A stretch of DNA of 64,000 bases from Hyaloraphidium curvatum SAG 235-1. Taxonomy: Eukaryota; Fungi; Monoblepharomycota. How positions within the stretch are numbered: the stretch's first letter is position 1; every line of letters starts with the position of its first letter. The translations under genes and the position numbers were made by a program. The notes under the pieces were generated by a model. It was not told the origin of the DNA, did no database searches, and saw only the letters and a list, made by a program, of their open reading frames with translations. The stretch spans positions 1-64,000 of the forward strand of contig JAIVFI010000038.1 in the NCBI GenBank assembly GCA_025558095.1, written 5' to 3'. Below, one piece after another: positions 54,686-64,000 of this stretch.

Positions 54686-57600
54686 ATGGCGACGGCGGAT
54701 GGCAAATCGCCGCGGCGCGGGCGGCGGAGGGCGGCGGCGGGGTCGGCGCGGGCGGCGCGGCTGCTGCTCGCCCTCGCCGCCCTGTTCGCCCCGCTCCCGG
54801 CCGTGCCCGCGGCCGCTGCCCTGGCGCCCCGAATTCCCCCTTCCGCGTCACTTTCGCTCTTCCTTGCCCTCCTCCTGACCGCCTTCCCGGGGCCCTCCGC
54901 CGCCCAGACCTGCACGGGCGGCCGCGTCGCCTGCTTCGGCTCGTGCGTGTTCACGTCGACGGACCGCACCAACTGCGGGTCATGTGGCGTGACCTGTGGC
55001 TCGGGCCAGTCCTGCTCGGGGGGCTCGTGCCGCCTCGCGTGCCCGGCGGGCCAGACGGACTGCTTCGGCCGCTGCGTGGCCACGGCGACGGACGAGCAGA
55101 ACGTGGGCGCTTCCTCGCCGCACACCGCGATGTGCTGCCCTGGTAACCTGCGTTTCGACAGTGCGGATCGTGCGGGATCGTCTGCGGCTCCGGGCTGACC
55201 TGCTCGGGGGGCTCCTGCTCCCTCTCGTGCCCCTCGGGCCAGGCCAACTGCGGCGGCACCTGCACCAGCCTCTCCACCACCTCCAACTGCGGATCCTGTG
55301 GAGCTGCGTGTGGCAGCGGTCAAAGAGTGGGTTTCCCCGTCCTCCCCGACTCCCACTTTGCTGACCCTCACCCCCGCGAAGTGCACCGGGGGCCGCTGCG
55401 AGACCGTCGACCCCTGCGCCGGCATCTCTTGCGGCACCTTCTCTTCCTGCTCCGGAGGCGCCTGCTCGTGCACCCCGGGGTACGTCTCGGACGCCGGCGG
55501 GCGGGACTGCTACCTCCGCGACCCCTGCGCCGGCGTCTCTTGCGGCTCCTTCTCGTCGTGCTCCGGGGGGACGTGCCGCTGCAATTCGGGGTACGTCTCG
55601 GACGGCGGCACCGGGCGGAACTGCTACCTGCCCGACCCCTGCGCCGGCGTCTCGTGCGGGAGCTTCTCCTCGTGCTCGGGCGGCACCTGCTCCTGCTCCG
55701 CGGGTTACGTCTCCGACTCGGGGGGCCGAAACTGCTACCTCCCCGATCCCTGCGGCGGCGTGGACTGCGGGTCCTTCTCGTCCTGCTCGGGGGGCGCGTG
55801 CAGGTGCAACGAGGGGTACGTCTCGGACTCGGGTGGGAGGAACTGCTACCTGCGCGACCCCTGTTCGGGGGTCGACTGCGGGTCGTTCTCTTCATGCTCG
55901 GGGGGCACCTGCGCGTGCAACGCGGGGTACGTCTCGGACCTGGGCGGGCGCAACTGCTACCTGCGCGATCCGTGCGCCGGCGTCGATTGCGGTTCCTTCA
56001 GCTCGTGTTCCGGAGGCACCTGCTCCTGCGCCCCGGGCTACGTCTCCGACTCGGGGGGCAGGAACTGCTACCTCCGCGACCCCTGCACGGGCATCGACTG
56101 CGGCTCCTTCTCCGCCTGCTCCGGGGGCACCTGCCGCTGCAACCCGGGCTACGTCTCGGACGGCGGCTCGGGCAGGAACTGCTACGCGCCCGACCCCTGC
56201 TCGGGGGTCGACTGCGGTTCGTTTTCGTCGTGCACGAACGGGATATGCACGTGCAATTCCGGGTACGTATCGGAGGGGGGCAATGGGAGGAACTGCGTCG
56301 CGGCGGATCCGTGCAGGGCGGTGTCGTGCCCTTCGGATCGATGGGTTAGTTCCTCGCATAGTCGTGCTTCGATCGCCTCTCACATCCCGCCGCCACCGAC
56401 AGTGCGTCGGCGGCACCTGCGTCTGCGCCGCCGGCCTCGCCGCGTGCGGCGACTCGGGCTGCGTTTCCCTCTCCTCCGACGCCCGCCACTGCGGCTCCTG
56501 CTCCAACGCCTGTCCCGCCGGCCAGTCGTGCAGCTCGGGCGCGTGCACCTGCACCGGCGGGCTCGCTTCCTGCGGCGGCGCCTGCGTCTCGCTCGCCACC
56601 GACAGGGCGCACTGCGGATCGTGCGGATCTCCCTGCCCGGCGGACGCGACGGGGTGCGAGGGCGGGAGCTGCGCGTTCAGGCCGTCGTGCGCGGCGGGGC
56701 AGACCAACTGCGGGTCGGCCGGCGCGCTCGACTGCGCCACGCTGGATTCGGACATCAGGAACTGCGGGGCTTGTGGCAGAGCGTGTCCCAATGGGCAGAT
56801 CGTGGGTTTTCTATTCGGGCCGGGGACGTGACGACTGACTCCCGTTCTTCCGCAGTGCTCGGGCGGGCAGTGCGCCTGCCCCGGCGGCCTCTCCGCCTGC
56901 GCGGGCGGCTGCGTCGCCCTGTCTTCGGACGCGGCCAATTGCGGGTCATGCGGGGCTGCGTGTCCCGAGGGACGCAGCTGCGTGGGCGGGACGTGCTCGG
57001 TGGTCTGCGGGGCGGGAACGGCCGAGTGCGGGGGGCAGTGCGTGAACCTGGCGAGCAATGTGGGCATTCTGCGAGGGTGCCGCGTGCTGCCAGTGCTGAT
57101 TCTCGATCATTCACAGCCCTTCCATTGCGGCACTTGCTCCAATGCGTGCCCCGCCGGCAGCGACTGCTCCGGCGGCACCTGTGTTCTTGTCTGCGGCGCC
57201 GGCACCGCCAATTGCGGCGGGGCCTGCGTCGACACCTCCTCCAGCGCATCTCACTGCGGATCGTGCGGGACTGTCTGCCCGGCCGGGCACGCCTGCGTCG
57301 GGGGGACGTGCCAGCCGGCGCGACTGAGCTGCGCGCAGGGGTCGGCCGAGTGCGGGGGGAGCTGCGTGTCGCTGAGCACGGCCGAGAACTGCGGCGCCTG
57401 TGGCGCTGTTTGCGCGGGGGACTGCACGGGCGGGGTTTGCGTGCCGCGGGCCGTCAGCTCGCCGGCGGCACCGACGCAGACCCTCCGAACGAGCACCAAG
57501 ACGGTGGTGAGCACTCTCCCCGCGGTGGCGGCCTCGACCAGTACCTCGGCCTCGCGGTCCGCCTCGCCATCCCCGACGGCGACAGATTCCAGCGCCGCAA

Positions 57601-60300
57601 TCTTCGCGGCGCTGCCCTCCCGCGCCTCCCTCCCCTCGGGCGCGCAGCCCATCCCCGTCACCACCCCGGCCGCCTACCACATCCGCTCGTCGGCGCGCGG
57701 CGTGGCCTGCCAATCGTCGGGCTGCACCCTGGATCCCAGTGCCTCGGGACGGTACCACCTCGTCTGCGCCGGGGGCAGCGATCCCTCCTGCGGTGTGGTG
57801 ACGCTGGAAAAGGCCGAGGACCGACGACATTGCCTTGTGGCGCGCGGGACTTCGGTCGTGGAGGCCGTGTGCCCGCCGATTGCTGTCCCCTCCCGCTTGC
57901 GGAGGTCGGACGGTGCTGTCGACGCAGATCGGCATGAACTAGAAGCGCGGCAGGCCCAGCTCAACTACCCGTATTGGACGATGTTCATCGCCCCGGGCAA
58001 CGTGACCAAGCTCGTCAACGCCAACGTCGGACATACGGCGGGGTGCCTGCTGGCCAGCCCGCCGCCGTCCAGCGTCGCGATCGGGCCGTGCAACGACTCG
58101 CTTTCCGACGCGTGGTCGCTGATGGCCGCGGAGCCCGAGCCCGTGGCTCAGGGGCCCTCGGCGGGGCTGATCGCCGGGGTTGTCGTGGGCGTCGTCGCTG
58201 CTGGGGCTGCTGTCGGCGGCGCGGTCTTCGTGCTGGTCAGGCGGGGCAAGGCTGCAAAGGAACTGGCACCCGTGGCCCAGCCCGAGATGGTCAAGACGGA
58301 CGGTGGCGATGGGTTCGACGAGAAGCGGCTCTGGTCCGCCGCGGACTCGTTCCAGGATCCCGACCTCCCGGACATGGTCTCGCGGGTCAGCTCCAACCCG
58401 GCGTCCTTTGCCAACAGCGCAGACGCCCTCTTCGCCAAGCTCGACGGGTCTGCCTACGTGGATTCGTCGACCGGCTCTCTGGCCGTGCCGACTCTGAAGG
58501 CCGTGGTTCCGGTGCCCGCGATTCCGATCTCGGCCAGCCAGGATGTCAGCGCCGAGGGCTCGGACACCGCGGCGGTTTTGCAAGTGGACGGTACTCCGGC
58601 CGTCGACGAGGTCTCGGACAGTCTGCACATGCCGCCGGCTGAGGAACGCTTGGCTCTTTCCACCGAGAGGCCTGGGACGATCCTGCCGGCACCGGGATCG
58701 GAGCTTTCGATGCCGCTGTCGGACGCCCTGCCTGACATCACCCGCGATGTGCCGGTCGCCGGCAGCGAGGACCCCACCTCGGACGTGTCAACGGACCCCT
58801 TTGTGGTTCATCGCGTCTTTTGCCTCTACAACCGTGCCGGCGAGGACAGGAAAACCGTGCAGGTGGAGGTGCTGGCGACCGCCATACAGGCCTTCCGGGC
58901 GGGGCGGGCCGACGAGGTCTCCCTGGAAGTCGGGGACAAGGTCTATCTCCAGGTCGCCTTTTCGGACGGATGGGGGGTCGGCACGAACATGAGCAGCGGC
59001 AAGTTCGGCTGCTTCCCGGCCGACTTTCTCAACCTGGGCCTTCCGCCGCCTGTACGCGCGGACGAACGCGACGATTCGTCTTCGATCCGGCCTAGAACTG
59101 CGGACTCTCGCTCCGGCGCCGCCCTGTCGAGGGAAACCCCACGCTCTGCCTCGGCCTTCGAAGCTTCCACGGATTCCTTTCCTCCGCTTTCCGACTCGGT
59201 GGTGTCATCCGCGCCCGCGGCAAACCTCACGGCTCCGAAGCTGCTCCCCCTTCCCCCGCGCGTGGTGTCCCGGAAGCCCGCCGACAGCGCTGCGGGCTCG
59301 CCGACCTCCCCCCTCTCGCCGTCGTCGTTCGGCTTCTCCCTCACCAAACTTCTCGTATCGGAGTCAGACGTCGTTATTGACAGGACCAAGCGGCTGGGCG
59401 AGGGTGGATTCGGTGTCGTCTACGTGGGGCTGCTCCGTGGGCACATGCGGGTCGCCGTCAAGACGATCAAGGGCGAGCTGGACGACAAGATGATGAACGC
59501 CTTCGTCAAGGAAGTGCAGAACTGGGAGGGCCTCGTGCAGCGGAACGGTGGGCCCATTCGTTCGGATGGCGGATGCAGATGCTAACGACACTGCTCCAAG
59601 TTCTGCCCCTCATGGCCTTTTGCGTCTCGCCACCGATGATGGTTATGGACCTGATCAAGGGCGGCAACCTGCGGCAGTACTTGGGCAAGCGGAAATGGGA
59701 CCAGCCCACCGGACGCCGCCTCCTCCTCGACGTCGCTAACGGCATGCTCTACCTGCATTCGATGGGCATTCTACACGGTGACCTGAAGAGGTGGGCATCG
59801 ACCTGGTTCCCGTCTCAACTGAATGCTTACTTTGCTCCCAGCCTGAACGTCCTCGTGGACGGGAGCCGCGCCGTCATCACCGACTTTGGCCTCTCCAAGG
59901 TCCGCCGCGAGGTGTCCAAGCAGTCCGAGGTCGGCAAGGGGCTGGGCGGCACCCCGGGCTTCATCTCGCCCCAGGTGCTTTCCGGAGAGCAGCTCCAGCC
60001 GGCGGACGACGTCTACGCTTTTGCCATGGTGTGCTACGAGGTTGTCTCGCGGGGACGGTATCCGTTCGACGAGGTCGCCAACGCTGCGGCTGTGAGTGTC
60101 TCTGATCCAGCTTCAGCCGAACTCGACGCTGATCTCCCTTCTAGATCATTTACCGAGTTGCTATTGAGCGGAAGCGGCCGTCGCGGCCCGACAAGGTCCC
60201 CGACGCCGTCTGGGATCTGATCACGCGCTGCTGGGCGCACGAACCGGAGGATCGACCGTCTTTCGCAGCCGTGCGCGACGAGCTCGAGAAGCTTGTCTGA
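54686..60300 (+). CDS. Receptor-like kinase: signal/hydrophobic N-terminus, Stig1-like Cys repeats, 8 EGF-like repeats, Ser/Thr stalk, ricin-B-like region, TM, SH3, TKL kinase
   Basis: CxGxCV...DxxNCGxCGxxC repeats; TM LIAGVVVGVVAAGAAVGGAVFVLV (~58168-58240); SH3 (AFRAGRADEVSL...DGWGVG...GCFPADFL, ~58870-59030); kinase GEGGFG, VAVK, HGDLK/SLN, DFG, GTPGFISPQ, DVYAFA, CW...PEDRPSF. Confidence 0.88.
55409..56330 (+). repeat. Coding tandem repeat: 8 full EGF-like units of 111-114 bp plus a partial ninth
   Basis: DPC[AGST]G[IV][SD]CG[ST]FS[SA]CxxGxCxCxxGYVSxxGxxRxC repeated within one exon. Confidence 0.95.
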
Positions 60301-60837
60301 TTCACTGTCTCTGGAACTACTGGTTTTGTCTGCAATTGCCATGTATCTGCGCTCCAATCTCACTTCGTCGATGTTGATGTCGCAGCAAAAGTTCCACTGC
60401 TCTCCTAAGAATCGTCCGACTTCACTCCTGCGGCTGCAATAGGTCTCTCTTCGCTTCTCTCGATCCGCTGGCCCCCCGTCTGCCCGGGCAACCTCCCGGT
60501 CTCGCCGGTAGGAGTGACCGGGCGAATCGTCGTCGGCTCCGGTGAGCAAGGAGAGAAGTTGTCCGAACAAGAGAAGCGTAAGGAGACGGGCATCTAGACC
60601 CATTTTGAAGCCGCCGAACAATTCCCCGTTCTTCCTCTCGAATAGACTATTGCTGTGTGTTGCGCCATTTCCGTCTTGGTGCGCCAAGCCCCGACGAGCC
60701 CAACACGACGGTGGAACGTCCCTGAAGAACGACCCCCGAGGACCCACCAAACCACCACGCCCCCACTTGGGACACACCGGACCCACATCCGGCGGCGGCA
60801 GCACGCTACCAAGCACGCCGCCTCGCAATCCACAACG

Positions 60838-63175
60838 ATGCTGCGAGGTCCAACTGGGCCGGCCGACGCTGCGCCGGCGCGTCGGCGCCACGCCGCTTTG
60901 CCGCTCATGGCCGCCCTGCTGTTCGTCGCGATGCTCCTCTTCGCGGCGCCCGCCCTCGCCGCCGAGCGTTCCTCGTCGCACAAACCGTCGCTGGACGTGC
61001 GGCTCTCGGATCTCGCGGCGCTGCGCATCCCCGCAAACCTCGTCGACCGCGCGACCATCGGCCGCGACCTCGGCCCGGGCGACCTCGATTTTGGCGGTGA
61101 TGCCGTGCTCGGCGCTGGAGGCTTTGGTACCGTGCGCAAGGTCACCGTGATCCCACTGCGGGGCAAGACGGACAGGGTGTTCGCCGCCAAGGGCGCCTTT
61201 AGCCTGGGAGGCAACCCGCAGGATGACTACGCGCGCCACCTCAAGTCCTTCAGCACCGACCATCCTGACGCGCACGAATGGGATAACAACTTCTGGTCGC
61301 GGTTCCGGACGTACCTCTCCGCGGAAAAGCACCTCGGGAAAGCAGAGATGGACCAGCTGTTCGCCACGGCCCAGGAGGACGGAAAGGGCGTCTACGCCGC
61401 CTCACTCTTCGAGATCGAGGCACTGAAGGCCCTCGTCGGGGGGCCGTTCATCCTGCGTTACTGGGGCAGCTACGCGGGGCCGCTACCCCGCAGCGAGTCC
61501 CTCATCCGCGGCATGCAGCGGAGCATGCTCCTAATGACTGTGTGCTCAGGCGGGGACATGTCTAAGTGGTCAAAGGCCGGCACCGTGACGCCGGAGGAGC
61601 AGGCCAGCAAGAAGAAGAACAACGACTTCCTCAAGATGCTGAAGAAGATCGAGGCCGACAAGATCTTGGAAGAAAACGGTCTCTATGCGGACAACGGGCA
61701 GAGCGAACTGGGATCTAGGCGTTTGGTCCGCAGCAGGTTGTTTCGTCGGCAGGACGACGACGACGACCCCGCCGCGGGGGAGGACGAGAGTGGAGATGCC
61801 GAAGGGGACGAGCGGAGCCAGATGACGGGAGCCTAGGCCCCTTCACGGACGCGAAAGCCGCGGCAATGTTCGCGCGCGTGGTGATCGGCGTCGCTTACGT
61901 GCACCAGCGCGGATTCGTTCACAACGACATCAAGGTGAGGGTTGGAATGTGGGGACCAAAGACCATGGAACCGTTGACATCGCCCTGCCTAGGCCTCGAA
62001 CGTGCTCATCTGCTCGGACAACCTCCCCCGTATCATCGACTTCGGCTCAACGCGCACGGTGGACTTCATGCGCGACGGTTTCAACGGGCTCAAGGCCGGC
62101 AAGCCTCGGCCCAACATCGGGCAGACGCCGGGCTATCAGGCCCCCGAGTTCAGCTCGGCGACGATCAAAAAGTTCCCAAATGCCCCGCTCGCAAAGTACG
62201 GATCGGACACATTCGGTGCGACCTTCACTGCTGGGTTCCCGGATGGTTGCTGACCGCTCGGTGTCAGCCCTCGGTCGGATGCTCTACGATCTCTACCATA
62301 TGGGCGACTGGACGGGATCGTTCATGCCGTACCGCAAGGGCGACTTCACCCCCGGATCGTGGGGCAGTGGCAAAGGGCCGTGGTACGAGGGCCCGTACCC
62401 GCGCTTCCCGACCCTGCCCAGGGCGCGCACCAAGGCCGTCATGGATCTCGCCAACAAGCTCGCCGCGTACAAGCTCGCCGACCGCCCCGATTCGCCCGGC
62501 GAGCTGCTCGAGGCCGTGTTCACGTCGGACTACATCCTCGGCAGCGGCGCCCCCGAGTTCCAGGTCGAGGGGGCGACCCCGTTGGCCAAGGCGCAGGCTA
62601 TCATCCAGCGCCTGAACGAGCAGGGGATCGAGGCCGCGACGACGGATAACCAGCTCCTGCCGGGGGAGACTTTCGCCGGGGTCCTGACTGCGTGGAAGAA
62701 GGGCGGCGCCCAGCCGGTGCAGGCCGCCATGAGCCTCATCAAGGACTACCGCTGCGGGACCAAGATCAAGGTCAAGGTCGCGTTGTCCGAGACCTACAAA
62801 GCCCTGTGCATCAACGGCGGCCTGGACCCGGCCACCACGCGGCTGTACTTCAAGCTCTCACCCAAGAGCAAGGCCAAGAAGGGGCGGTCCAAACTGGTGT
62901 CGATCCTCGACGTGCCGGCGTGCGACTTCCTCAGGGACAAGGTGAATCGGTGGTCGCGCAACAACGAGCTGCAAGGGGGCACAGGCAAGGCCGCCCCGAC
63001 GGACATCTCGGTCACGGTCCCGGCGGGCGCCGTGTCGCCGGGGAGCTACTTCCTGTACGGGAAGATAAAGTCGTTCGAGTCGGCCAGGAAGGTCAAGGCC
63101 GCGGGGCAGGAGTACCGGTCGGGCAACGCGGAGGGATACACGAGCGAGGTGCCCGTGGTGGTCGTCGGCTGCTGA
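60838..63175 (+). CDS. Signal-peptide-bearing Ser/Thr (Hanks-type) protein kinase with C-terminal Cys-containing beta domain (copy 1)
   Basis: MAALLFVAMLLFAAPALAA; LGAGGFGTV, FAAK, EIEAL, HNDIK/ASN, IIDFG, TPGYQAPE, SDTF/ALG. Introns 61935-61992 and 62216-62267. The frame change near 61790-61836 needs an intron (GTGGAG..CTAG, 47 nt, restores the frame) or is a frameshift. Confidence 0.8.
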
Positions 63176-63394
63176 TGTACGCAGCCGCATGAAAAATTGG
63201 GCAGTTTTCTTGCAGCACGCATCCTTTACTACACCGACACCCCATTACGAAAACGGTCCCAGGAAACCCGGCAATCATCGATTCCGTTGAGTTCCACCTC
63301 CACCCCTGCCGCCCTCAAGGGGGCAAAAGACTCTACCAATTCTGCAGCTACCAAGCAGCTCTCTGTGTTCTGCCTGCTTTGAATGGCTATCCCT

Positions 63395-63525
63395 TGTGTT
63401 GCGCCATTTCCTCGTCGGTCGCCAAGCCCGGCGGCCGACGGAACGTCCCTGAAAACGACCCTGAGGACCCGCCGAACCCCCACGCCCCAGTTGGGATACA
63501 GCGAACCCACATTCGGGAGCGGCCG
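63395..63525 (+). repeat. Duplicated upstream/promoter segment shared with 60655-60800
   Basis: TGTGTTGCGCCATTTCC...CGCCAAGCCC...GGAACGTCCCTGAA...GAGGACCC...CCACGCCCC...TTGGGA...ACCCACAT occurs ahead of both kinase copies. Confidence 0.85.
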
Positions 63526-63551
63526 TGAGCACTGCCTCTTTGCGATCCGTC

Positions 63552-64000
63552 ATGCGGCTTCAGGGTCCGGGACGACCGGTCGGCGCAGCGGCGGCGCGAT
63601 GCCCGTCGCTCGCCTCCCTTCTGTTCTCCGCGCTCCTCCTCTTCGCCGCGGCCCCGGCTCGAGCGGCCGAGCGCCGGCCCTCGTCGAGCAAGCCATCGCT
63701 CGACGTGCGGCTCGCGGACCTCGCGGCGCTGCGCATCCCCGCAAACCTCGTCGACCGCACCACCATCGGCCACGACCTTGGTCCCGCCGACCTCGACTTT
63801 GGCGGCGACGCTGTGCTCGGCGCTGGCGGCTTCGGCACCGTGCGCAAGGTCACCGTAGTTCCCCTGCGCGGCAAGACGGACCGCGTGTTCGCCGCCAAAG
63901 GCGCCTTCAACATCGGCGGCGACCCGCGCGACGACTTCCTCCGGCACCTCAGGACCTTCCGCGCCGCTCATCCCGACGCTCACGAGTGGGACAACAACTT
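63552..64000 (+). CDS. Second tandem copy of the signal-peptide kinase (runs off the window)
   Basis: MRLQGPGRPVGAAAARCPSLASLLFSALLLFAAAPARAA then KPSLDVRLADLAALRIPANLVDR...LGAGGFGTVRKV...FAAK, nearly identical to copy 1. Confidence 0.85.
   Translation, partial: MRLQGPGRPVGAAAARCPSLASLLFSALLLFAAAPARAAERRPSSSKPSLDVRLADLAALRIPANLVDRTTIGHDLGPADLDFGGDAVLGAGGFGTVRKVTVVPLRGKTDRVFAAKGAFNIGGDPRDDFLRHLRTFRAAHPDAHEWDNN

Follow-up and report, generated by a model that had tools for sequence, protein, structure and literature searches.

Phosphorylation of secreted proteins, long unexplained, has in animals come to be ascribed to a small set of very atypical kinases of the lumen, such as Fam20C (the Golgi casein kinase), VLK/PKDCC, FAM69/DIPK and POMK, in which a kinase fold is placed in the lumen of the endoplasmic reticulum (ER) or Golgi by an N-terminal signal or anchor, carries disulfides and acts on secretory substrates. 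Among apicomplexan parasites, canonical-fold kinases that bear a signal peptide but lack a membrane span, and that often form tandem lineage-specific families, are represented by the Toxoplasma ROP kinases, WNG and Plasmodium FIKK, while the CRN8-type effectors join a signal peptide to an active Ser/Thr kinase in the oomycetes, which are filamentous fungus-like organisms, and CotH, with spore-coat kinases of bacteria and surface kinases of fungi, is the one kinase-like family already known as extracellular in early-diverging fungi. Outside animals and parasites, to our knowledge, almost nothing is known on kinases of secreted proteins, and we know of no free-living fungus in which a canonical protein kinase was demonstrated to be secreted. 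Here we describe a pair of kinase genes in Hyaloraphidium curvatum, a free-living aquatic saprobe of the Monoblepharomycota, located at the end of a window of 64,000 nt, namely the whole stretch of DNA analysed, which corresponds to bases 1-64000 of contig C38 in an assembly of 31.9 Mb and 55 contigs. Each copy encodes a signal-peptide-like segment, a kinase domain, a disordered insert with an Arg/poly-Asp motif, and about 210 C-terminal residues forming a helix and a beta-sandwich. Our results suggest, with a probability that we put at roughly 0.55, that the pair belongs to a lineage-restricted family of active Ser/Thr-type kinases which are lumenal or secreted by means of a cleavable signal peptide.

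The two genes were recognized by repeat finding as direct repeats about 2.7 kb apart, with a 300-nt block at 83% identity and a spacing of 2708 nt, and with shorter repeat blocks over the signal region and the upstream DNA of both copies. Copy 1 spans 60838-63175 of the forward strand, and copy 2, on the same strand, begins at 63552, crosses the end of the window and finishes at C38 65876; the encoded proteins are 80-86% identical. Aligning the upstream regions revealed that about 190 nt before each ATG are duplicated too: the upstream DNA of copy 1 (60655-60837, a promoter or 5' leader) aligns with that of copy 2 (63390-63551), both on the forward strand, and contains conserved blocks including TGTGTTGCGCCATTTCC and GGAACGTCCCTGAA. 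Both copies are under purifying selection, with omega of 0.05-0.22 at a synonymous divergence (dS) of about 0.4-0.7. In exon 4, codons 51-100 have a synonymous divergence of just 0.056, although it is 0.43-0.78 on either side, and a short gene-conversion tract is therefore probable at about 62420-62570 of the window (C38 about 65140-65290 in copy 2). For database searches copy 1 was represented by the protein KAI9004338 (P0001), and copy 2 was handled exon by exon. The first-pass annotation, made from the sequence of the window, had described a tandem array with duplicated upstream DNA and proposed to count paralogues beyond the window edge; the duplication of the upstream DNA holds well, while the array shrinks to a tandem pair. 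In fact, a whole-genome search with exon 1, exon 4 and a profile of the C-terminal domain as queries found four genes carrying that domain, i.e. the pair, with copy 2 now completed outside the window, and two dispersed paralogues, one on contig C9 and one on contig C19.

At the N-terminus, both ATGs (60838 and 63552) open a positively charged stretch followed by an uncharged hydrophobic span of 20-24 residues, which ends in ALA-A in copy 1 and in ARA-A in copy 2, the dash marking the putative cleavage point. In copy 1 the signal-peptide-like segment comprises 41 codons (60838-60960), with an Arg-rich n-region before the hydrophobic core, and in copy 2 it comprises 38 codons (63552-63665), after which the start of the kinase N-lobe occupies 63666-64000, where the gene leaves the window. 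In both copies some 45 residues separate the segment from the Gly-rich loop, and no in-frame Met lies among them; translation of a complete kinase thus has to include the signal segment, and a downstream start would cost the Gly loop together with the catalytic Lys. Moreover, a signal-like N-terminus with a positive start, a hydrophobic core and small residues at positions -3 and -1 is present in all seven complete family members, including two genes from another genome of about 55% GC and one from a metagenome contig. The small residues come directly after the hydrophobic core in every member (AxA, VSA, TDA, VRA or GRA); the uncharged spans measure 16-24 residues and the hydrophobic cores about 12-17. 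The charge of the N-flank exceeds that of the C-flank in six of the seven, and two members have poly-Asp in the C-flank. Between the two copies, codons 1-50 show a nonsynonymous divergence (dN) of 0.256 with omega of 0.41, against 0.048 and 0.11 for codons 51-100; that is to say, the signal region diverged faster than the mature part and yet stayed hydrophobic. A Kyte-Doolittle scan of the whole proteins detected no second segment at membrane-helix hydrophobicity in any member, and by direct reading the C-termini bear no KDEL/HDEL, no GPI-type (glycosylphosphatidylinositol) tail and no CaaX box. Altogether, the heuristic scan finds the features of a classical secretory protein, namely n-region, h-region, -3/-1 residues and no later helix.

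As for the kinase domain, spliced copy 1 (P0001) scores 64.1 bits against the Pfam family PF00069 (Pkinase), whose cut-off is 31.7, while the single exons stay below this cut-off and the N-lobe alone is too divergent for a Pfam match. The motifs of P0001 are GAGGFG at residue 69, FAAK at 92, EIEALK at 169, HNDIKASN at 323, DFG at 343 and GYQAPE at 374. The Gly loop, the Lys, the alphaC Glu, the HxD, the following Lys and Asn, and DFG or DYG are present in every member that holds the region concerned; APE is found in both copies, and its Glu is missing in three members. The kinase is thereby of the non-RD kind (HND), and it has the Lys two residues after HxD that marks the Ser/Thr type. The AlphaFold model is a standard bilobal kinase (predicted template-modelling score, pTM, 0.74) with a local confidence (pLDDT) of 85-95 in the core, and Foldseek aligns it to FGFR, AAK1, TNIK and PknB at template-modelling scores (TM) of about 0.65-0.71 normalised to the target. 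Two insertions set it apart in the model. An extra helical insertion of about 60 residues lies between the Lys strand and alphaC, and the insert before alphaE is disordered, with pLDDT below 50 at residues 253-294. Within the latter, a motif of Arg-Leu-x(1-5)-Arg and four or five Asp (P0001 about 264-280, window about 61700-61750) is kept in P0001 and in P0003-P0005, members that are only about 38% identical; it is not present in the subgroup of the C9 and C19 paralogues. A Kex2/furin site in this insert was ruled out as a general feature, the dibasic pair not being conserved in all members. The best sequence matches are generic Hanks-type kinases, in the C-lobe, at E values of 1e-5 to 1e-7, and the models of the small-molecule kinases APH and ABC1 match weakly. 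Judged by its motifs and profile score, the domain is a canonical but divergent eukaryotic protein kinase (ePK) with no assignable kinase group, and the retention of its catalytic residues under omega of about 0.1 is as expected of active enzymes.

The C-terminal part of about 210 residues is modelled as a long helix that carries the invariant motif N-x-x-G-I-x-A-A-x-x-D-N, followed by an immunoglobulin (Ig)-like beta-sandwich. It matches no Pfam family, and its nearest folds are those of lytic polysaccharide monooxygenases, the NIS1 effector, fibronectin type III domains, carbohydrate-binding modules and Ig sandwiches, all of them weak matches. No named fold was assigned to the domain from the searches of Foldseek/PDB, VIA wide and the ESM atlas, where Z values were at most 6.9 and TM was about 0.3-0.46. 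Of the about 680 residues of the mature protein exactly six are Cys, and each of them occupies a conserved column. Two belong to the kinase, one at the hinge and one directly after the catalytic loop, and four to the C-terminal domain, including the terminal residue itself. Such a Cys set, complete, even in number and conserved, is typical of extracellular proteins held together by disulfides, and beta-sandwiches of such a kind are common among extracellular proteins; the six Cys and the sandwich would fit an oxidising compartment. Much of what the first-pass annotation had noticed is borne out here, that is, the hydrophobic segment with an AxA-type site before the N-lobe, the stronger divergence of this segment than of the part behind it, the lack of a transmembrane helix, the Arg/acidic insert, and the beta domain with four Cys, the last of them being the terminal residue.

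In order to see how widely such proteins occur, a full HMMER pass was made over 1.84 billion representatives; it returned six members at E<1e-30 and two fragments, beyond which the matches are generic kinases with similarity in the C-lobe only. Five homologues lie outside H. curvatum, in one other fungus-like genome and in metagenomes. The former, recovered in run SRR26194948, has two family genes, a GC content of about 55% and a neighbouring Zn2Cys6 gene, and it is another species, since it shares 72% identity with Hyaloraphidium in GcvP. No stand-alone relatives came up in a word search with the C-terminal profile, a scan of metagenome contigs with the C-lobe profile gave generic kinases only (24-51% identity) and no new members, and the language-model atlas offered no usable match for the family. 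The literature searched on fungal secreted canonical kinases yielded nothing relevant, and the only name attached to the family is the automatic "kinase-like domain-containing protein". As far as these searches reach, it is a coherent, real and lineage-restricted family. One public model within it is odd: that of the C9 paralogue (KAI9027095) reads HGD-MLELPSGS-LKPAN across the catalytic loop, which looks like a retained piece of intron; in the other members an intron is situated there or close by.

Copy 2 is intact and transcribed. A sequencing run, read as RNA because its contigs skip GT..AG introns, provides for this gene a contig of 1928 nt with a mean word depth of about 55, which starts at C38 63241, passes through the duplicated upstream DNA, the ATG and the signal region, continues without break through the acidic insert, and has both introns spliced out. 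Exon 1 is uninterrupted up to the HND-IK motif, and the introns are at C38 64641-64710 and 64934-64989. In the public model of copy 2 (KAI9004340, P0002, 392 aa) translation begins at an internal Met, and the signal segment is left out together with the entire N-lobe, whereas the missing N-terminal part (C38 63552-64640) lies in one open frame and in one RNA contig; because of this internal start, a full-length copy 2 of the secreted type is absent from the protein databases. The same RNA contig also skips 62 nt at 63449-63510 of the window with CT..AC ends. On the minus strand this piece is a good GT..AG intron (GTGGGT...TTTTCAG) inside the duplicated upstream DNA, and the minus-strand splice-site motifs are kept before copy 1 too (60722-60786). 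These features point to a spliced transcript, either antisense or divergent, that was merged with the sense mRNA by unstranded assembly, and such a transcript may explain the conservation of the upstream blocks. In addition, an upstream ATG in the RNA-covered leader of copy 2 opens an open reading frame (ORF) of 48 codons (63384-63528); copy 1 is without this leader ORF and has ATTG at the position equivalent to the upstream ATG.

Copy 1 merits a more careful reading. Its model has four exons, 60838-61789, 61837-61934, 61993-62215 and 62268-63175, with the stop codon at 63173-63175, and a script check revealed that the public protein KAI9004338 (703 aa) is identical to it except for a start at the second Met (60907), which still leaves a signal-like N-terminus. 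Behind the signal segment, the remainder of exon 1 (60961-61789) encodes the N-lobe with the Gly loop (61111-61128) and the Lys (61189-61191), the helical insertion, the alphaC Glu, the hinge and the disordered insert with the Arg/poly-Asp motif (about 61570-61789). Exon 2 (61837-61934) holds alphaE and the catalytic loop with HND at 61920-61928 and the Lys at 61932-61934; exon 3 (61993-62215) holds the Asn (61999-62001), DFG (62038-62046), a long activation segment and APE; and exon 4 (62268-63175) holds the end of the C-lobe and, from about 62537, the C-terminal domain. Two of the introns are seen spliced in RNA, i.e. the 58-nt intron at 61935-61992 (GTGAGG..TAG) by a 17-nt spliced loose end of a contig, and the 52-nt intron at 62216-62267 (GTGCGA..CAG) by a spliced contig (joint L008 1615>1668). 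The remaining one, a 47-nt GT..AG "intron" of the public model at 61790-61836, is different, because its homologue in copy 2 is a stretch of 48 nt that is coding and transcribed. Compared with that stretch, copy 1 is one base short near 61812, and its frame then stops at a TAG at 61834 unless 61790-61836 is removed. The complete motif set of copy 1, including the non-RD HND, which the first-pass annotation had reported, thus exists in the spliced form and depends on this removal, and as an intact exemplar of the family copy 1 has to give way to the intact and well-expressed copy 2.

We consider it rather probable that copy 1 is not intact as assembled and that the 47-nt intron is in either case a device of annotation. 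At the place in question copy 2 has GGC instead of AGT and so no GT donor, one base more, and TGG instead of TAG, and its mRNA contig runs through without interruption. The 47-nt stretch is conserved between the copies to roughly the same degree as the exons beside it, while both true introns are scrambled, and seven of its eight substitutions, on both sides of the gap, fall on third positions of the copy 2 frame (binomial P about 0.003). Because the substitutions cluster in this way and the conservation matches that of the flanking exons, the stretch is best taken, on its substitution pattern, to have evolved as coding sequence. The gap near 61812 would then be either very recent or an error of assembly, and the public intron may be a bridge laid by the annotator. 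With a very recent one-base deletion, copy 1 would be a young pseudogene, possibly saved by fortuitous splicing of 61790-61836; with one G dropped in assembly, the gene would read through like copy 2. Its RNA coverage is thin, with a depth of 2-10 where copy 2 reaches about 55, and in the one RNA run no contig covers 61789-61990. On the other side, the supposed intron does have GT..AG ends and a TGAC branch-like site 14 nt upstream, its removal restores the frame exactly, the two introns behind it are spliced, and the downstream exons show omega of 0.05-0.22. This last signal would be kept after a recent break, and since most of the divergence predates the break, downstream purifying selection fits all three readings of copy 1, namely a true intron, a deletion and a dropped base. 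For the frame break no matching ORF product is recorded from another assembly. With copy 1 in doubt, our argument therefore rests on copy 2 and on the dispersed paralogues.

Under the secretory reading that we prefer, the signal peptide would be cleaved after the AxA site, and the kinase domain and the C-terminal sandwich would take on their fold inside the ER lumen, where the six Cys could pair into as many as three disulfides. The lack of KDEL/HDEL, of a transmembrane helix and of a GPI signal would suggest that the soluble enzyme transits the Golgi, where lumenal ATP is present, before its release to the cell surface or into the medium. Its targets would be Ser/Thr residues on secretory, cell-wall or extracellular proteins, a specificity predicted from the Lys two residues after HxD and from the GT-x-GY-x-APE loop; as a non-RD kinase it would not require phosphorylation of the activation loop by an upstream kinase, and the beta-sandwich may bind the substrate or a wall component. 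Several observations weigh against this reading. The signal call follows heuristic rules (positive n-region, hydrophobic h-region, small -3/-1 residues) and not a trained predictor. N-termini rich in Ala and Leu arise fairly often in GC-rich genomes: among the 110 ATG-ORFs of at least 150 aa in the GC-rich window, five are similarly hydrophobic at the N-terminus, a rough background, and the case against chance consequently rests on the conservation in seven homologues instead of one copy. In the C19 paralogue the positive charge behind the hydrophobic segment exceeds that in front of it, an N-glycosylation sequon is missing from most members, and the fold matches of the C-terminal domain are below the level of relatedness (best Z 6.9, TM about 0.3). 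In addition, the RNA contigs are unstranded and so are no proof of a sense mRNA that starts upstream of the ATG.

Some of these observations lend themselves to other explanations, each of which we regard as unlikely. If the signal were an uncleaved anchor, the proteins would be type II membrane-anchored lumenal or ecto-kinases, tethered like several animal Golgi kinases; the uncharged spans of 16-24 residues are at the upper end for signal peptides and the charge distribution predicts the same N-in orientation for a signal anchor, whereas the small -3/-1 residues directly behind the hydrophobic core in every member and the core lengths of about 12-17 residues, below a typical membrane span, speak for cleavage. 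To a similarly small degree one may think of a non-secretory protein, with the N-terminus anchoring a cytosolic kinase (N-out/C-in, or in the outer membrane of an organelle) or with the segment left untranslated. The cytosol is after all the usual workplace of kinases, the Arg-rich stretch behind the hydrophobic segment of the C19 paralogue would agree with it, and the sense transcript has no mapped 5' end; yet the positive charge is on the N-side in six of seven members with poly-Asp directly after the segment in two, the six Cys and the sandwich suit an oxidising compartment, and a start past the segment drops the Gly loop and the catalytic Lys. Slightly less probable still is a secretory protein that is not a protein kinase in action, its fold serving as a pseudokinase-like binding or scaffold module, or working on a non-protein substrate. 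The N-lobe that Pfam does not recognize by itself, the APE Glu missing in three members and the weak APH/ABC1 matches would allow for this, but the full set from Gly loop to DFG/DYG retained under omega of about 0.1 is what active enzymes would be expected to show. A lumenal or secreted active kinase is thus the reading with which we compare the known systems.

For this comparison the animal lumenal kinases served as the working model. They have highly atypical folds and Pfam families of their own, while the Hyaloraphidium family is a canonical ePK (HxD-K-x-x-N, DFG, APE) with another C-terminal domain. Indeed, the profiles of Fam20C (PF06702) and FAM69/DIPK (PF12260, PIP49_C) do not match P0001 at E up to 1, and Fam20C and PIP49_C were not found in the H. 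curvatum genome by a search whose controls stayed silent as well. The apicomplexan secreted ePKs share the canonical fold, the signal peptide, the missing membrane span and, in many cases, the tandem lineage-specific organization; however, they belong to obligate parasites, which deliver them to the host via special organelles, and they have no Cys-containing C-terminal sandwich, unlike the proteins of the free-living Hyaloraphidium. No ROPK is among the 60 best PDB sequence matches or the 50 best Foldseek matches. CotH (PF08757) has an atypical kinase fold unrelated in sequence to the Hyaloraphidium pair, and its profile does not match P0001. The CRN proteins combine LFLAK/DWL translocation modules with an RD kinase, neither of which is found in the pair, and no host is known for H. 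curvatum; direct reading of the N-terminal 100 residues found no LFLAK and no DWL/HVLVxxP motif. Finally the generic Hanks-type kinases PknB, STE20/OSR1, CaMKK, MARK and GCN2 have the same catalytic core and provide the best C-lobe matches, but this likeness is confined to about 60-120 residues of the C-lobe, and nothing in those kinases corresponds to the N-lobe with its helical insertion, to the acidic insert or to the C-terminal domain. In function the nearest analogues are thus the animal lumenal kinases and the apicomplexan secreted ePKs, and by membership the family is neither. The first-pass annotation had named secreted kinases as rare and had proposed an undescribed family of ecto-, lumenal or effector kinases; a coherent nameless family with a conserved signal and conserved Cys, matched by none of the known secreted-kinase families, is what we find, while for a saprobe that lives freely the role of an effector is unlikely.

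Going one step further, it is conceivable, at somewhat less than even odds, that the Hyaloraphidium lineage independently converted a kinase of the cytosolic type into a disulfide-stabilised secretory or extracellular enzyme with its own substrate- or wall-binding sandwich, which would make the family a fungal, canonical-ePK counterpart of the animal Fam20C/VLK system and would endow a free-living fungus with regulated phosphorylation of the proteins that it secretes or builds into its wall. If these kinases are indeed lumenal or extracellular and active, they would provide an independently evolved and tractable case of the standard kinase fold working in an oxidising, low-ATP compartment, together with a new domain that is possibly substrate-targeting, and they would give a reason to seek phosphoproteins in fungal walls and secretomes. 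The analysis has a value for annotation as well, considering that the public model of copy 2 misses the signal and the N-lobe and that of copy 1 masks the frame break.

Concerning other kinase-like genes of this genome, about four CotH loci were observed, at C16:461498-462433, C23:48062-49030, C26:41774-42797 and C4:553094-553935. The gene directly upstream of the pair (56982-60220, forward strand) is a receptor-like kinase with a Cys-rich STIG1-like ectodomain that contains C-x-x-x-C repeat units, one membrane helix and an SH3 domain, and its TKL-type kinase domain is interrupted by an intron near 59585.

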